A stretch of 59,267 bases of DNA from Bigelowiella natans CCMP2755 (lineage: Eukaryota; Protista; Cercozoa), in contig ADNK01002679.1 of assembly GCA_000320545.1 (NCBI GenBank), positions 1 to 59,267 of the forward strand, read 5' to 3'. Made by a program: the position numbers and the translations under genes. Positions 17,679 to 27,706 of this stretch are shown here, one piece after another. The notes beneath the pieces were generated by a model. It saw only the letters and a program-made list of their open reading frames with translations, was not told where the DNA came from and made no database searches. Position 1 is the first letter of the stretch. Each line of letters starts with the position of its first letter.

Positions 17679-19097
17679 TAATAGCGAAGAAGGATTTTGC
17701 CCTGAGTTCAGTGAGACAGCAATGTAAATAATCTTGACGAGTTGACATAAGATCCGCTACACAATAGACACATGATGAACTATTTCACCAACTATTCTAG
17801 ATGTGTCAGAGTGATCACACAGAGCTCCTTTACTTGTTTAGTGCGCGTACTATAAACATCTAGACTTGCATAAATTTTACCATCTGCATTTAGAATTTCA
17901 TGCAATGCTAGAATGCGCGCTAGCGCCGTGCAAACGGTCTATTTCGCATCGTAGCGTCTAGAGCGTGACGGGACATATCTACACATCTAGACATGCACGC
18001 AGAGATGCATGGGTGCAACTTATCTAGTTATGGGACGGATGTGATGAATGATTAAATATTTCCAATGCTAGAATACTAGAGAAGTCATCCTAGCATCGCA
18101 GATGCCTCTGCCTAGCTGCTGCAACCAGCAAGCTTTGCACTATTGGCCAAATCGAATTTTCGAAGTCAAACGCCGCCGGCCGCTACCGGCTGCGCTCGAA
18201 ATCTGAGGACCTTGCTAGCTTGTGAACGCTTGCAATTTTGATTTTCATGACGTGCGGTCTTCAGCATTGCACTTTGCATAGTCTCAGCTAGTTCCCTTTT
18301 AAAAATGGGAAAAATTGTTTTTTTCAAAAAAATCATTGAAATGAGCTATCTAGCTAGCTAGCCCCCATGTTTTCCTATTTCGCTGGAAGCTGAAGCATGG
18401 AAAAAATCAAAACTTTGATTTTTCAGAGTTGACCATCAAAGTTTCAATGGGAAACAGATCACGTCATCAGAAACACTGCATCAAAGCTAGCAAAGTTTTG
18501 TGTGCATTGGAGCATCAGTTTTTTTGAAAAAGTTGACAAAGTCGTTCCATCAATTCGCTAGTTTGCTAGTTTGGCCCAAAATCGTCATTTTTGTTTTGTC
18601 ACTTTGCACCCCTCTAGCGTTCCCAGGCTAGCAGGCAGCATTGTGATGCAAACCAAATGACAGACATGCAATGCTAGAATGTGACATGCAATAACACATG
18701 CAACACAACATGCTAGCATGTTACTGTTTCCATCATCCAACAATGAGCTCAGAATTTGTGAACATGTCTTAGTTGGTGACACCTAGACACCTCTTGGAAT
18801 GCGGTTTGAGCACTCTGGCACTGCTAGACTGGTTTGAGTTGTGCAAACAAAAAAATCCCTGCCAGTAGCGCAGCCGATGCGCTATGCATAGCAGAGCGCG
18901 CTAGCGCGCGGCCGGTCGCGAAACATCGAAATGATGATGTTTGTCCACACTGGCGCTGGTATCGTGTCTGTTTAGGCACAATGATTGGAGCAAGCTTCAG
19001 GCTAGCAAGGGTGGACAGATGCCGCGATGTGTGAGACGATGTATTCAAACACAGACATTTACATGCATGCACACTAGCATGCCGCAGCACATATCTC

Positions 19098-21844
19098 TTA
19101 AAAATTTTCCTTGTGTAGTTTGAAAAATTGTTTGTGCTCCACCGAACTGTATCGACCGCACATCTGCTTCAGATCCTTGCCAATGTATCGATTCCCACAA
19201 AACATGACACCAACATTTTTGTTAGGGTGCAAGTGAGCAACCCTCTCAAAAAGAGGACTCCAATCGGGTCGGCCTTTGATTACAGTGATGTCTCCAAATT
19301 GCTTCTTCTTTTCCTTAGGATTTAGCATGTATTTATAGAGCTGTTCTCTTCCAAATGTAGCCTTTTCTTGAATGACTTTCATATCGGCAACGCTTCTCCT
19401 TCCCCAGAAGTCTTTTCTTTTGATTCCGCTGAGAGCGTTTTTCACATCATCAGTTTTAATTACCTTTGGAACTGAAGTGATGTATATATTGAATTTCCAA
19501 GACTTTCCTTTCATACCGTCGCCTTTTTTGCGCATGTCAGTCAAGGCATTTTGACAATCACATACTTTGGCAGCAAACCATCTATATGCTTCAACATCGC
19601 GGTAACTCACAACCCAAAAAAAGTGACAATGTGCAGGGAATATTTTCCCTAACCCAAATTTCCATCGATGGTACACAATAGATTCAGCACAGGCGATAAC
19701 AGGTGTTAGTCCAATTCCAGCCCCTGCGATCATGGCAACTTCGTATTCAGTCATATGCTGTGTAGGTGCGGAATGAGGCCCGTCTATGAGTAGCATTTTC
19801 AGCCCGTTTGGGCCAAGAACACGTCCTTTAACCACCTTTCCAAGATTGTTTCTGTGCATGAGCTCATGATAGAACTTTCCACTTGGAGCCAAGGACATTA
19901 AGTAATCTCGAACACCCTCTGTCCAGCTCCCTGGCCCTTGGACCTGAATGTGGAGAGTCCACGTATCCTTTTGAGGAGGCGAGGATATCGTAAAAGGATG
20001 CCATTCAAATGGCTTTACGGAGGGACAATTCACGAACACATATTGACCCTCACGGTAGCCATCAGTACCAAAAGCAGATTTCTCCATTTCTATTGCAAGA
20101 AGATTCGGCTCCATAACCATGACTGAAACAATTGAGACATCTCGTTTGGATCGTATGTAACGACAGATACGCTCTATGATGTAAAGAATACCAGGAATGA
20201 TGAAATAGAACCAAAAATTTGGATTGAAGCCACCCGCCCCATGGGTGAGGGTGATAGCGAAGTAAAAGATAAAGAGATGATGAGAATACCAAAATATCTC
20301 AAATGTGGGCCTTTTTACATCCTCAAAAGCTCCCATGTATATAAGTTGACACATCACTAGAAGGATAACCCCAGAATAGAATGGCCAGAGACCGAAGAGA
20401 GCAACAGTTTGGTCCGGTCTAATGTTGTAATTTATAAAGTGAGCTACAGTATGAAAGATAACCCCAAACAATGATATTTTAGCTAGAGTTTTATGGAGAA
20501 GAAGTGCTTTATCTAAAGGTACGAAATCAAAGAATATTCGAATTGCCTTAGCACTACAAGTTTCTTGAGAAGTAGCTCTATTGTAAATGAAGCGAATAAT
20601 AGTGCGACAGACTGGTATCAGTAGCAGACTTGAATTTACATCAATAATCGCACCGAATGCCTTTGCCCACGGTGCCCACGGGGAAAGACGATCGTCCTCG
20701 TCTTGTGAATTTACAATATCTGTCCATATTACTGCAGTGTAGATTGCAAGGGCTACATTCCCACTTGCATATAGAGCGCAAAAAATCATACGCTGTAATT
20801 TATTTTCCTCGTGCTTGTGAACGATATAGCTAGTAACTTTATCGCAACAAGTTAAATTAGCATTTTCCTCTGCCAATTCCTTATCTCTTCTTGTTTTGCG
20901 TTTTTTTTTGGAAGGAATAAAAGGCTCATCCTTCAAGAAACCAATGACATCAATGAAAGCAGCAATTAATAAAAACAATCCTGCGGTCCAGAGTGGAAAT
21001 GATACGAAACAAATTCCACTCATCACAAGCCAGAGGAGAGCACGTAGTGGAAACATTTCTATAATGGGTTCGCCTTCGAATAAATATTCATAAACACCTA
21101 GTATTACTCCAACAAGTGTTGCAAGCATTCCTAGGCCAACATCCATAATTCCGGATCCATCAACCTTAAGAATGACACCACACACACATAAAAAGTTTAT
21201 CCCATATCAATGATTGATTCGAATTATTAATGTTCTAAAACCTTTTCTTCAGCTCCAAAGTGGACAGCTAGTAGACCAAATATAACCAGGGCAACAGAGC
21301 CTCCATAAAGCATTTGTTTATGAGCATAGACACGAAAAACCGTACGAGACGCATCCTTTTGGTTTCTTTTCTTGATATTCAGAACATGTTGCTTTTCTCC
21401 ATCAGAAACCTTCGAATCAACAATTAGCAACCCTTGTGTTGATTGGTCATAACTTCCAACTGAAAATGTGCTATCTTGTCGTAGTAAGGATCCCACTGGG
21501 TTGCAATAATTTGCAGGGAAAACACCATGCTTCACGTTTCCACTTGGAAGTCGGATTTCTCCCAAATACCAACCAGAAGGATCTTTTTTGAGAAGTTTGA
21601 TGCGATCTCCCTCTTTAAAAGAAAGCTGATCGGGATCTAGAACGTAAAGAGAAGAAATATTTCTTGAGATTTTTGTTGTGTATGTCAAATGTCACTCCCA
21701 TTAAAGAAAAACAAATGATTTGTAACATTCTAATAGCTCAACCATTGGCCGCGAAATCCCACTGAGCCTGAAATTAATCACCCGAAGCCATTAAACAACG
21801 AAACATCTTGGATCTAGATTAACGAAGACCTTGTAGATCGCCAT
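19098..21844 (-). CDS. NADPH oxidase (Nox/gp91phox-like) with N-terminal SH3 and p22phox-like 4-TM domain, copy 1
   Basis: Exons 21844-21830, 21767-21743, 21636-21242 and 21164-19098 splice in frame via GT-AG. SH3: AQWDFAANDPDQLSFKEGDRI...GWYLGE...GVFPANY. Heme His: LLHKTLAK..FHTVAH and FWYSHHLF..LTHG. FAD: EWHPFTISS. NADPH: IDGPHSAP, AGAGIGLTP, MFCG. C-terminal HKENF. Confidence 0.93.
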
Positions 21845-22450
21845 GTTGTGAGATGGTAGAATGAGCTGTTGCTCAAAAGGCAGCACGGTAAAGCGTTAAA
21901 TTCATTTTCAATTTTGTGAAGGAAACGAGTTTTTGACCACCGAGATCACTTGCAGCTTCTCAGTGCTCCCATTTAATATTACCCAATTGTGATTCCTGTG
22001 CTATGGATGTGTCTCTTCACGAATACTTCCTTCATTTGTACAAAACCGATGAACAAAAAGCTGCACACAGTGATGCAATATGCTGGAAGTCGGGGACTTT
22101 TGCACGTGGGGGAGTTTTTAGTGATATACAAAAGCGCGCACAATATTCAGAGGTATAAATTTATAATGCGACATCTTACTTTTTATGTCGCACTGCTTTT
22201 CTTAAATGCCATCCTTAGACATAATATAATTAGTCCAAATCTCTGGAGGAGTACACAATGTAAAAATCGGCTGTGATGCTAGTATACCAAATTGAATAAT
22301 GAATTAATGTCGCGTTCAATAAAAAAAACGCCTTCCACAAATAATTTGTTTGAGAAGCGCTTTCTAAAACTTAGATCTTTTCCCGAACCACAGATTTCTC
22401 TGTCATGAGTGCGGCATTCTGGATCTAACATTGATCACTTGCTCCTCGCG

Positions 22451-23518
22451 ATGGCAATGGCCGATGGCTTTGGGTTCGAAGAGAAGATCCCTGATATGTC
22501 TGCAACTTTATGTGGCAGCTACGGTCGTTACAACCATGAATTTCTATTATTTGGTACAACTAAAAAGTTGGACGACAATGATGAATTTGACCAACGCGAA
22601 CAATTTCAAGCGCCAAAAGCAATAGAAGGCGAAGAAAATACAAAACCAGTCTTAAGTGAAGTTGGTGGAAAATTTGATAAAGATGCTGATAACAATATCA
22701 ACTTGAATTGCCAAAGTTCAAAATATGATGAAAAGCTCTCAATACCATCAGGTTTGCGTTTCAATCAGATACTTACGTAGTATTGAACTTTAAATGTGCT
22801 TTGATATTCAGGAGATGATTTTCTTAATACAGAAAGTTGCTGTACAGAACAGCAACGAAATCGAAGTGAGGAAATCGACAGTAGCAGTGAGAGCGCCTCC
22901 GTGCAACAGCTTCAATTGGATAGCTCTCTTAGTGAGGATACCCATTTCAGATCAAAACCACAGATTGTCAAACACAAAGGTTTAGTCTATACTGGTCCAA
23001 CTAAGGGAAATCGTCCAAACTATAAGTTAAAGCAGGAATGGGAATGGAACATATATCCTCACGGAGTATCTAAACAAAATCATAAACTTAGGGTACAGAT
23101 CAAACAGAAGGGGGCAAATCCCACATACCCATCATTTCCATGTACTCTCTCTGGTTTGCTAGATGCTGCACTGTTTAGAGACCAGGAGTCATTTAAACTC
23201 TGGAAATCTGGTGTTCTAGCTCGAACTCCAAAGTTCAATTTCGAAGCATATAGCACGGCAACAGCTGATAATGATGTAGCTCAGTACAATGCAAGATCTA
23301 AAAATGCTGGAGCGAGAGCAAGTCATCGAAGGTTTAAGAAAGTCAATAAACGAAGAACAAATTATAAATCAAATAATATTAGAAAAAGCTTAAGAACGTC
23401 ATCATCTCGCTCACCGAAAGATTCTACAAAGCTACTCGATGCACAATCAGCTAAAGGACAAGATGACGTTCTCTGCAAGAGTCGCCGTCGTCGATGTCAG
23501 ACGAGAAAACTGAAATGA
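22451..23518 (+). CDS. Putative AP2-like DNA-binding protein (2 exons)
   Basis: Intron 22752-22811 joins ORFs 22409 and 22901 in frame. PHGVSKQNHKLRVQIKQKG..YPSF..TLSGLLDAALFRDQES..LW...PKFNF resembles the AP2/ERF pattern GV..I..F.T..AA..RD..NF. A basic C-terminal tail follows. Confidence 0.6.
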
Positions 23519-25018
23519 TATAATCCAATTGGAAAATAATGAAATGTCCATCTTCAACACCATTCGCACTCCAAGATCGTTTGGTAAAATTTTGTAAAAC
23601 TTTTAGCTTCAATCTTCTGTCATGCCTAGATGCACCTGTTATTTCAGGATGATGACCATCATGTTTGCAAGGAGCTCATTGTCGCGCACATCTAGATGAA
23701 CAAAGTCACACGCAGCAACGCCTTGGATGTGAATGCAACTGTTTCTTTGCAGTTCCGCTGCTTTCACTGTGGTGACCGCATGTCCAGCACTGGAATCGAG
23801 TGAATGCAAAACAACTCGCCTTGGCAATCAAAAACATTGATTTGTTCGAATCAGTGATCTAGCTAGCTAGGACTCTGACTAGCTGGGGCTGCACGTGTTG
23901 GTGCGATGAAAGCAGCCGGCTGAGATTGCTGTGGCACAGCGTGGGTGGCATGGACGGTGTCACCAAAGGAGCAAGTTGAAAGTTGAAGCCTTGCTAGCTG
24001 TGTGCTCATCAAGTTTTGTTGTGATGTGAGTGTCACGAGCTCTGTCAATCACCTTGGGCTGAGAGTTCCACTCCCCCACCTGCCCAAACATGCACGTGTT
24101 GTGAGCAGTCTTGCTCAAAGCAGTGTTTCCCAAAGTGTCACGATCACTCCAAGTTGACGAATGGAATGAATGAAGGGTTTGGATGCAATTGGAGCACTTG
24201 ACAGATCATCGGCTGCCACATTTTCAATCGAATGAAACGTTGCAGTGAAAATGTGTTGCGAGCACAATGTGCCCGTGGCAGATGATCGTGGAGCGCCATT
24301 CGTGGATTTGTGCGAAAATCATGTCCATTTTCAAGTCACACCATCACAACGGGATTCTGTCTTTGCTACAATCATGAGAAAACAACTTGCTGAACATTGG
24401 CAAAAAAGACAGGCTTCAAGTTTAATGCATGTTCGTTGTCTCTCAGAGCAGGTGCCCTGTTTTGTCAACCGACTTTCGAAAGTCGCGTGGCAAGCACGAG
24501 CGTACGCGCAAAGCTCCGACTCTGTGGCTTCAGTTCTTGGAAACTGGCTTGTTGTTGTTGTCGCACCATTAAAAATATGACCCGTTTCTTGTTTGTGATT
24601 GTGCATCTGAGGGAAGAAGACACTGTACCCATGTCGGCAGCCACGCGACAAGAGGGCACTATGTACCAAGCCCAAATTTTTAAACGGTAGAGCACCAGTT
24701 GGACCACGAACGCATTTAATTATATGTGTAAGACAATATTCGCAGTAATCATAAATAGTAAAAGGATCGCAATCTACTAGATCTACAGCACGAGTGAGGG
24801 AGAACTATTTAGATCTTACATCGGGTTTCAGATCCATCGGTTTTCCAGCCACTGAGCATGGAGTATGAAAACGCAAATGCGCCGTTAAAAACTAAGTCGC
24901 GATGTTGAAATAGACTGTCGTTTAATTTTGTTTGATTTATGTTTGTGCTGTACACGAACACAAACTCAAAGTGCCTTACCGTCTGAGTTGCAGAAACCAA
25001 ACTCAAGGCTGAGACGAC

Positions 25019-27706
25019 ATGGCGGTTTACCAGGTGTGCAGATAGTACATTCTACTTTTTCGTTATTGGTAGTTAATTTTGCTTGTTGGAATAGGCACAA
25101 TGGAATTTCCAAGCCACCGAGCAGGATCAATTATCCATGCAAAAAGGCGATCTGATCACTCTTTTGAGGAAAGATGAATCTGGCTGGTGGTTAGGTGAGA
25201 AGAAGCTTCCAAATGGGCAAGTTGTAGACGGGCTTTTTCCTGCAAACTACTGCAAGCCGGTGAATGGGTCCGTCTCTGGATCTTCTGGCGAATCTGTTAG
25301 CGATAAGATGGATAAGATGTACACCGGTCCATCTAGCAATTCGCTGTACAACAATCAAAACCAATCTGGTAGTGATCACATGCTTCTTGAAAAAAATGGC
25401 CACAAGACGTCTGATGTTGAACGAAGGCATATCAAGGAGCTGAAGGAGAAGAACCAAAAACCTATTTCAAGAACTGTATTCCGTGTGTACGCTCATAAAC
25501 AAATTAAGTATGGTGCTGCTGTTGCATTGGTATCTTTCGGTCTTCTTGGCGTTCACTTTGGCCTTGCCGCAAGGGTAGAAAAAGAAGTTTGGCATATGTT
25601 GAGAATCATATTTCAAACTATAATTTCCAATATTAGGTTGAAGGATCTGGATTCATGGATGTTATTCTGGGAATTGTTGCAGCAGGAGTTGGCATTCTTT
25701 TCTCCACTTGGGAGAGTATGCACCATGGTGCACCTTTGACGGATATGTTCCCTCTCCGTGCATTAATGTGGACCGTCATGGCTGGTGTTTGTTTTGTGTC
25801 TTTTCCCCTTTGGACAGCTGGATTATTTCTCCTCGTTGCCTCGATGATTGACGTTATTGGTTTTCTGAAGGAGGAACCCTATAATCCTCCGAAGCAGCGC
25901 CGTAAGACGCAAAAAGAAAGAGAGGTTGCCGAATATGCTGCACCCGAAAACTTCTGTGATTGGGTGAAGTCATTCTTTATCAGTAAGTACGAAGAGAACA
26001 AGCTTCAACGTATGATCTTCTGCGCAGTTTACATCGGTGCTAATATCGGTTTCGCTATTTATACATTTTTCCTTTGGTTGGGAATCGTGAACGCTATGCC
26101 AGAGGAAGATCGATTGACAATTTGGGTGGTATTCGCAAGACTTTTCGGAGCATTTATTAACTTAAACTCTCCTCTACTTCTCATCCCTGTTTGCCGTACG
26201 ATTATTCGGATCTTGTATAACATAGCAACTTCAGAGGAAACGCGTGGGGCTAAAGCTCTAAGAGTCTTTTTCGCTTTTGTCCCTCTCGACAAAGCAATCT
26301 TGTTGCATAGAACTGCTGCCAAAGTATCTCTTATGGGGGTCATCGGCCACACTATATTCCACTTCATCAATTACCAGGCTCGCCCAGATCAAACCGTACG
26401 AGCTGTTGGATTATGGCCATTTTACTCTGGAATCGTGTTGCTGATGATTTGCCAGATGCTTTATCATGGAGCATTTGAGGACGTCAAAAGACCTAACTTT
26501 GAAATATTTTGGTATTCACACCACCTTTTCATCCCATACTTTTTGCTTATCATTACTCACGGAGCCATGGGACTAAACCTGTTTTTCACTCTACTGTTGA
26601 CTGTCCCAGCGTTTTTGTACATCACTGAGCGTATTCTTAGAGAAGTACGTGCTAAACGCGAAGTTGCCGTGACCTCCGTCACTACTATGGAGCCAAATCT
26701 CTTGGCAATCGAATTTGATAAGGAATCTGCTTTCGGTCCAGCTGGTTACCGTGAAGGCCAGTATGTTTTCGTAAACTGTCCGAGTGTCAAGCCTTTGGAG
26801 TGGCATCCATTTACCATCTCATCCCCCCCCCAAAAGGATACATTTTCTCTTCATATTCAAGTTCAAGGGCCTGGCAGTTAGACTGAGGGTGTTAGAAATC
26901 ACCTTTGCAGCATGCGTCCCGAGGGTAAAACATTTCACGAATTTCATCGTAGAAATGCCGAAGGCCAGCTTGTCAAAGGGAGAATTTATGGCCCTAACGA
27001 AAAGCAAATTCTCCTCATTGATGGTCCACACTCTGCTCCTACACAGCATATGACTGAGTACGAGGTTGCCATTATTGCTGGAGCTGGTATTGGCCTTACT
27101 CCTGTTGTGGCGTGCACCGAGTCTATTGTATACCATCGATGGAAATATGGTCTTGGAAAGGTGTATCCAGCTCATACTCATTTCTTTTGGGTTGTTAGCT
27201 ACAGGGATATCGAGGCTTATCGTTGGTTTATCTCCAAAGTAACTGAATGTCAACGTGCAGTTTCTAATATGAGAAGCAAGGGTGATACGATGAAGGGAAA
27301 AACTTGGAATTTCCACATCTTTATTACGTCAGTTCCAAAGACGATCAACCAGACTCATGTGCAAGAAGCTATGATTGGTATTAAAAGAAATGATTTCTGG
27401 GGTAGGCAGAGTGTTCACGATATGAAGACTCTCCAGGAAAAGTCCTCCTTCGAAAAAAAAGAGCTCTTTGCTTACATGCTGAACCCCACAGAAACTGAGA
27501 AAAAGTTCAATGATGTACGAGTTGTGAAGGGAAGGCCAAAGTGGGATCCAATCTTCCAAAGTATTGCTAAGATGCATCCGAAGAAGAACGTGGGTGTTAT
27601 GTTCTGTGGAAATCCATTCATTGGAAAGGATTTGAAGAAGATGTGCATTCGGTACAGCTCCGTTGAGCGTGGCCAACTTTTCCGTCTTCATAAAGAAAAT
27701 TTTTAA
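25019..27706 (+). CDS. NADPH oxidase with N-terminal SH3 and p22phox-like domain, copy 2 (in-frame TAG at 26879-26881; possible pseudogene or recoded gene)
   Basis: Exons 25019-25033, 25095-25574 and 25637-27706. Collinear with copy 1 along its whole length. GPGS*TEGVR aligns with copy 1 GPGSWTEGVR, and ORFs 25655 and 26912 are in the same frame. Confidence 0.9.

Follow-up and report, generated by a model that had tools for sequence, protein, structure and literature searches.

The window analysed here is a 59,267-nucleotide stretch of the genome of the chlorarachniophyte alga Bigelowiella natans CCMP2755 (contig ADNK01002679.1, positions 1 to 59,267; GenBank assembly GCA_000320545.1, 91.4 Mb), and the gene we studied lies on its minus strand, where it encodes an NADPH oxidase (NOX) whose catalytic core is preceded, in the same polypeptide, by an SH3 domain and a four-helix membrane domain homologous to p22phox, the separate membrane subunit of human cytochrome b558 (Table 1). 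Two minus-strand open-reading frames (ORFs) are visible in the unspliced DNA: one at 21227-21688, in which Pfam recognises the SH3 domain, and one of 695 codons at 19098-21185, in which it recognises Ferric_reduct, FAD_binding_8 and NAD_binding_6. The original prediction, made from the letters alone, had quoted four hydrophobic stretches between the SH3 and the first oxidase helix, and these were found on the minus strand, the first lying in the shorter ORF and the remaining three where the longer one begins. It had also inferred that splicing joins the SH3, the four helices and the oxidase core, and the transcripts agree with it down to the coordinates. The exons are joined in the mRNA: two public transcript contigs (L001 and L002) each hold a single uninterrupted ORF of 833 amino acids and map to the window in four blocks at ~99.9% identity, and Logan contigs from three runs of three studies have exactly the three introns of Table 1 spliced out, all of them GT..AG on the minus strand. 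The coding bases add up to 2502, that is 833 codons plus the stop. The protein search returned the same product as an 833-amino-acid MMETSP/JGI transcript translation (P0001), which has both SH3 and NOX domains and is 100% identical to the long ORF; this protein and the transcript L001 served as the full-length and cross-exon queries throughout, in place of window exons joined by hand. At residue 127 (~21300) the window encodes Ser (GGSVALV) and the MMETSP transcript L001 encodes Phe, with the Logan contigs siding with the window, which is probably a strain or allele difference.

Table 1 Exons, introns and protein domains of the studied oxidase gene, with its paralogue, in window coordinates
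Feature	Position	Strand	Details
Exon 1	21830-21909	-	5' untranslated region and codons 1-5, ATG 21844-21842; start of transcript L001 maps here; spliced contigs in three runs
Intron 1	21768-21829	-	62 nt, GT..AG; skipped in three runs (X1, X10, X16)
Exon 2	21743-21767	-	25 nt, start of SH3
Intron 2	21637-21742	-	106 nt, GT..AG; skipped in three runs
Exon 3	21242-21636	-	Remaining SH3, disordered linker and helix 1 of the p22phox-like domain
Intron 3	21165-21241	-	77 nt, GT..AG; interrupts the p22phox-like domain after helix 1; skipped in three runs
Exon 4	19021-21164	-	Helices 2-4 of the p22phox-like domain, linker, NOX core, stop 19100-19098, 3' untranslated region
SH3 domain	21494-21844	-	Residues 1-61, exons 1-3; Pfam SH3_1, SH3_9 and SH3_2 at E 1e-8 to 1e-10 on P0001; predicted local distance difference test (pLDDT) 85-96
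p22phox-like four-helix membrane domain	20904-21346	-	Residues ~111-232; helices 114-142, 150-174, 185-197, 201-222; pLDDT 87-98 in the full-length model
Basic two-helix cytosolic linker	20799-20903	-	Residues 233-267, from p22-like helix 4 to NOX helix 1; starts directly after PFIPSK
NOX six-helix heme domain	20148-20798	-	Residues 268-484; heme H369, H383, H440, H453; extra H387; Pfam Ferric_reduct
Dehydrogenase domain (FAD and NADPH)	19101-20147	-	Residues 485-833; HPFT, GAGIG..TP, C-terminal Phe; Pfam FAD_binding_8, NAD_binding_6
Paralogue Bigna1/80967	25019-27706	+	Divergently oriented; SH3, p22-like domain and NOX; introns 25034-25094 and ~25574-25636

The full-length structure is predicted with good confidence (pLDDT 89.6, predicted template modelling score 0.81), with residues 63-88, which follow the SH3, disordered. 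Judged from its sequence, the core holds all of the heme, FAD and NADPH motifs together with an extra histidine that is specific to NOX enzymes. As heme ligands we took four histidines spaced 13-14 residues apart in helices 3 and 5 of the six-helix ferric reductase domain, and these (H369/H383 and H440/H453) are invariant across an alignment of 63 full-length proteins (alignment A1). Four residues past H383, at the position of NOX2 His119, lies H387, also invariant in 63 of 63; an extra helix-3 histidine at this place separates NOX enzymes that generate reactive oxygen species from ferric reductases (PMC3591440, PMC9421330). The HPFT motif (H534, P535, F536 and T537), the glycines G626, G628 and G630 and the C-terminal F833 are conserved as well. 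Profile scores against the PDB place the core closest to NOX2 (331 bits, ahead of NOX5 at 292 and DUOX1 at 220), and its best structural match is again NOX2 (8wej_B, E 9e-28, template modelling score 0.72). EF-hands had been predicted to be absent, and the Pfam scan agrees: neither P0001 nor its relatives match an EF-hand family at E <= 10, whilst the plant RBOH matches from the same protein search do carry them.

The similarity of the four-helix domain to p22phox had been named in advance, beside the joining of the exons, as one of two observations on which the prediction would stand or fall, and it proved strong. A profile built from A1 matches cytochrome b-245 light chain in the PDB at E 2.3e-9, with profile positions 153-278 falling onto p22phox residues 3-141, and a second profile, built from a domain alignment of nine intron-free transcript contigs (A2), ranks three human p22phox chains first to third (E 3.3e-10 to 1.7e-9), the next match being at E 0.12. 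The A2-p22phox alignment spans all four helices end to end (p22phox residues 5-138), and the motifs that the original prediction had matched (WA.., ..EY, R.. and E..P) sit on its aligned columns. Searched against 1.84 billion representative proteins, A2 gave 355 matches, including short standalone proteins that start with the domain. We scanned with Pfam 20 short matches taken from the best 150 of these 355: five pass the p22phox family PF05038 strongly (79-159 bits: P0232, P0238, P0231, P0229 and P0227), one more does so modestly, and none passes any other membrane Pfam family, COPI_assoc and Cg6151-P included. Two of the passing proteins, from Capsaspora owczarzaki and Sphaeroforma arctica, are named p22-phox (E ~1e-10). 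The relationship is visible to profiles only, phmmer with a single domain sequence finding nothing in the PDB; a word-indexed search for standalone relatives of 83-264 amino acids also returned none and was uninformative, as it needs shared 5-mers. Among standalone p22phox or near-p22phox proteins, four (P0185, P0230, P0227 and P0238) show weak Pfam matches to COPI_assoc, Cg6151-P (TVP18/Flower) and DUF7727.

The predicted fold tells the same story. We modelled residues 90-262 with AlphaFold (pLDDT 76) and compared the model with known structures, as the original prediction had proposed; with VIA-align, run unfiltered against 48,161 chains, human p22phox (8gz3_A) came first at Z 13.1 (root-mean-square deviation 2.3 A over 110 residues, 21% identity), ~4 Z units above the next fold (Z 9.2, 5% identity), and Foldseek placed three p22phox chains on top (E 0.04-0.07, probability 1.0). 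This resemblance far exceeds chance. In human p22phox a buried polar network is formed by Asn11, Glu53, Arg90, His94 and Tyr121, substitutions in which (E53V, R90Q/W and H94R) cause chronic granulomatous disease, and helices 1 and 4, with Trp6 and Trp9, form the interface with NOX2 helices 3-5 (PMC9711523, Liu et al.). Reading equivalent residues in the register of the A2-p22phox alignment, we found Glu53 kept as E171 in 63 of 63 proteins, and Arg90 kept as Arg in 35 of the 37 members that bear an SH3 and in 9 of the 26 that do not. The other network positions vary but remain polar or aromatic: Asn11 is His or Ser in the family, His94 is Tyr, Trp or His, and Tyr121 is Asn, Asp, Tyr or His. At the interface positions of Trp6 and Trp9 stand the likewise aromatic Phe/Tyr and Trp/Tyr, and the equivalent of p22phox Glu129 is E225, which like E171 is invariant in both A1 and A2. 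Both sequence and fold thereby show the four-helix domain to be a p22phox homologue, down to the buried Glu and Arg, two disease hotspots of the human protein. The argument that an even number of helices keeps both the SH3 and the linker cytosolic is consistent with this, given the four helices of p22phox and the cytosolic position of the NOX N-terminus.

The architecture is that of a large protist family spread over Rhizaria, stramenopiles and others. A local iteration with hidden Markov models found the p22-like domain in 77 of 120 returned NOX relatives, including forms of ~1000 amino acids without an SH3, and the same layout recurs in other organisms, in dozens of transcript contigs free of introns. 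The SH3 is present in the chlorarachniophytes Bigelowiella and Amorphochlora and in Leptophrys vorax (Vampyrellida), and is missing from the stramenopiles Chlorochromonas (Ochromonas) danica and Mucochytrium quahogii. A truncated transcript of Ploeotia vitrea carries the p22-like domain, as do many metatranscriptome contigs; a Picozoa NOX (P0089) is a member of the family, and a relative of similar length (P0079) has the domain. Within the B. natans genome all p22-like matches share a strand with NOX exons and are placed just upstream of them (twice in the window, and on contigs C2351 and C776), and no standalone p22phox was found there. The only two six-frame PF05038 matches in that genome, both weak (C1578:39541-39759 and C3082:16316-16549), were rejected as false, being poly-Pro and Arg-Glu low-complexity sequence that resembles the p22phox tail.

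In the N-terminal SH3 the pocket residues Trp36 and Pro54 are invariant in all 37 SH3-bearing members and Tyr57 is mostly kept, which places the domain under selection as a binder. Its PDB matches place GRB2 and sorbin above p47phox (p47phox SH3 at E 1e-13), and Pfam finds no PX domain, no tandem or second SH3 and no autoinhibitory region in P0001, so that the domain reads as a generic single SH3 and not as a specific homologue of p47phox. The proposal that three normally separate oxidase components are fused thus holds for the p22phox and gp91phox homologues; its third part, a p47phox-type SH3, does not stand. The relatives without an SH3 have a different N-terminus: 16 of 26 carry a class II proline motif in the tail (e.g. 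PPPPPR, PPVPPR, PAPPPR), the proteins in question being of the stramenopile type (P0073-P0110 range, e.g. L010 and L011) and the tail being taken as their N-terminal 130 residues. Across the whole family this pattern suggests that the N-terminal tail may be the end at which regulators dock. Several smaller observations concern the same tails and the same clade. One SH3-less protein (P0043) has a WW-like segment in its N-terminal tail, and in P0042 an SH3 with an insert had been overlooked by the precomputed Pfam annotation. Ile or Leu often takes the place of the Arg90 equivalent in the SH3-less clade, where the loop that joins p22-like helices 1 and 2 is also larger by ~40-50 residues and has four conserved cysteines (L010:524-1150, L011:492-1166); this loop is presumably disulfide-bonded and extracytosolic.

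Several results weigh against p22phox homology, and they have to be set beside the evidence above. PF05038 has no match at E <= 10 on the P0001 domain and so misses its gathering cut-off of 25 bits, and the domain alone and seven full-length relatives likewise gave no usable PF05038 match in Pfam, the single faint match being that of P0034 (E 0.55). Among the nine domain sequences of A2 the best PF05038 score (E 1.3e-4) also lies below the cut-off; PF05038 is the commonest weak match there (four of nine), but COPI_assoc (three of nine, best 9.5e-4) and DUF7727 (two of nine) score at a similar size, and the nearest ESM Atlas clusters are Flower/TVP18 and COPI_assoc, at 0.78, which is below a meaningful level. 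An hhalign comparison of A2 with an alignment of four standalone p22phox proteins (A3) gave a probability of 99.6% (E 3.8e-24), a figure that is not fully independent, since the A3 sequences had been picked using A2; the matches to human p22phox are independent. The weak COPI_assoc and DUF7727 matches, the Atlas clusters and the commonness of four-helix bundles as a fold would suit another reading, in which the helices form a small generic module (COPI_assoc, TVP18-Flower or DUF7727 kind) that serves trafficking or membrane anchoring and is no p22phox-type partner of the heme domain. We regard this reading as very unlikely: PF05038 is the only Pfam family to pass its cut-off among the 20 short matches scanned, no PDB sequence other than human p22phox matches significantly, and p22phox stands clear of all other folds, the buried Glu and Arg peculiar to p22phox are conserved, and the domain comes in every case joined to a NOX2-like core. 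The Pfam model instead appears too narrow for this branch, of which the present domain would be a divergent homologue and not a Pfam-defined member, and the domain is unannotated because that model misses it; p22phox itself may belong to a wider superfamily of four-helix membrane proteins. That the protein acts as a ferric or metal reductase and is no superoxide-producing oxidase we find distinctly unlikely as well, if slightly less so. Its Pfam domains are indeed common to ferric reductases, but the invariant H387 is the mark of the oxidases, the nearest solved relatives are NOX2, NOX5 and DUOX and, to our knowledge, p22phox is a partner of NOX enzymes only, which we count against a reductase. 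A gene-model artefact, in which the SH3 with the four helices and the NOX ORF would be separate neighbouring genes, has a practically negligible chance of being true: the JGI model of the gene (Bigna1/50376, P0269, in the P0001 cluster) is only 511 amino acids long and lacks the SH3 and p22-like part, but full-length transcripts are present in two MMETSP-derived assemblies, the Logan contigs of three studies span all junctions in frame, and the intron-free transcripts of other organisms repeat the same order of domains.

A separate question is what the SH3 binds. The original prediction had proposed that PFIPSK in this gene and PYNPPK in the paralogue, PxxPxK motifs just after the p22-like domain, could be an intramolecular ligand, which would make the oxidase autoinhibited or self-activated with no need of a partner. 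Both motifs conform to the class II consensus for SH3 ligands, the domain has an intact pocket and the disordered linker of ~50 residues would give it the necessary reach. We nevertheless judge self-binding unlikely, for the motif occurs in only four of the 37 SH3-bearing relatives and is missing from the closest ones (P0002, P0003 and P0004); among near relatives, the two B. natans genes of the window are the only ones with a PxxPxK after helix 4. PFIPSK moreover aligns to p22phox residues 130-136, a segment that the human protein, in its solved structure, tucks into a crevice of its own p22phox chain (PMC9711523). The poor conservation of the motif and this packing together favour a partner in trans. 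No other proline motif is conserved in the 37 SH3-bearing members examined, nor is there a conserved proline-rich region C-terminal of the p22-like domain, where a basic linker of ~35 residues runs into NOX helix 1 instead.

Taken together, it is very probable that the gene encodes a single-chain cytochrome b558 core, made up of an SH3 domain, a disordered linker, a p22phox homologue, the basic linker and a complete NOX2-like oxidase. In the predicted packing the p22-like domain would lie against the side of the NOX membrane domain, in the manner of p22phox on NOX2 and presumably at helices 3-5 as in 8GZ3, and so placed it would help the heme domain to mature and keep it stable; being fused, p22 and NOX would have an obligatory 1:1 partnership. 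Electrons are predicted to pass from cytosolic NADPH to FAD, over the two hemes and on to O2 at the far side of the membrane. The p22 C-terminal tail, which in animals bears the proline-rich docking site, would be consumed by the fusion, and because of this the docking of regulators may have shifted to the N-terminal tail; the SH3 found there in this clade, with its intact pocket, would most likely bring in a cytosolic activator in trans, one with a proline-rich region. Putting the SH3 on the oxidase would reverse the polarity of the animal contact, in which the proline-rich region belongs to p22phox and the SH3 to p47phox.

In animals p22phox is a separate subunit that forms a heterodimer with NOX1-4, and its C-terminal proline-rich region docks the tandem SH3 of p47phox or NOXO1. 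Both parts of human cytochrome b558 (NOX2/gp91phox plus p22phox; PDB 8GZ3, 7U8G and 8WEJ) have homologues in the B. natans protein, but the human complex consists of two polypeptides, whereas here the C-terminal end of the p22-like part is fused to NOX helix 1 in one chain, an N-terminal SH3 is added, the cytosolic loop between p22-like helices 2 and 3 is ~22 residues shorter and there is no free proline-rich C-terminal tail; nor was a partner of the p47phox, p67phox or p40phox type identified. The SH3 recalls the p47phox and NOXO1 organisers, whose SH3 domains mediate assembly of the oxidase and from which the protein differs in having no PX domain, one SH3 in place of the tandem pair and no autoinhibitory region. 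Fungal NOX enzymes are the first matches beyond the family in the protein search, and the fungal system of NoxA/NoxB, NoxD and NoxR is alike in pairing a calcium-independent NOX with a p22phox-type membrane partner; the fungal oxidase, however, is without an SH3, and NoxD, the p22phox homologue, is a separate protein according to Lacaze et al. (2015), as cited in PMC9421330. NOX5, DUOX and plant RBOH likewise have a regulatory module fused N-terminally to the NOX core, but theirs is a calcium-binding EF-hand unit, where the B. natans protein has a membrane subunit and an SH3 and no EF-hands. A precedent for an SH3 on the oxidase chain is a NOX of Naegleria gruberi, the sole SH3 recorded in that survey, which lies inside the NADPH-binding domain (PMC3591440) and likewise implies a proline-rich partner; it is a C-terminal insert in a protein for which no p22phox-like domain is reported (PMC3591440), in contrast to the N-terminal SH3 described here. 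No published description of a p22phox-NOX fusion was found in the full-text literature, subscription journals lying outside its coverage.

The earliest p22phox has been placed in choanoflagellates (PMC2121648), and p22phox, p47phox and p67phox have been called restricted to opisthokonts, with the activation of EF-hand-free algal NOX called unknown (PMC9421330). On the sequence evidence p22phox exists far beyond animals and fungi, and its presence on NOX2-like cores in Rhizaria, stramenopiles and other protists revises the opisthokont-only picture (PMC9421330) and bears on the order in which subunit-dependent and calcium-dependent regulation arose. We tentatively suggest, as a possibility that falls somewhat short of probable, that the p22phox-NOX partnership predates the split of Amorphea from SAR/Diaphoretickes, or moved between them very early, and that many protists have kept it as a covalent fusion in which the N-terminal tail is an interchangeable docking platform (an SH3, or a WW-like or proline-rich segment in the SH3-less forms), replacing the C-terminal tail of animal p22phox, the polarity of the contact being either reversed or kept. 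In that case these proteins would be natural single-chain cytochromes b558 with a new mode of recruiting regulators. A natural fusion is also genetic evidence for the 1:1 p22phox-NOX pair as the functional unit, and a single-chain b558 could ease expression, structure determination and inhibitor work compared with the human two-subunit complex, which needs chaperones such as EROS. Current annotation does not show the architecture, as the whole branch escapes PF05038 and the N-terminal half is absent from the JGI model.

The second oxidase gene of the window, a divergently oriented paralogue on the plus strand, has the same SH3 and four helices, as had been predicted. Its second exon (25095-25580) is identical to the JGI model Bigna1/80967 (P0005). 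The paralogue is an expressed gene with a premature stop. In frame at 26879-26881, a TAG replaces the Trp of a GSWT motif in the FAD-binding domain that every relative keeps, and contigs from four runs of four studies, at high depth, read the same as the genome at this site and show no intron. The TAG could mark an expressed pseudogene, a strain-specific nonsense allele or a readthrough site. The catalogue model P0005 (804 amino acids) splices away the HPFT region, a splice that no contig supports and that was apparently made to avoid the TAG, so that the catalogue models of both genes look wrong. Between the two oxidase genes lies a further spliced plus-strand transcript at 22402-23635, with a GT..AG intron at 22748-22807, which overlaps a basic ORF of 205 codons at 22901-23518.

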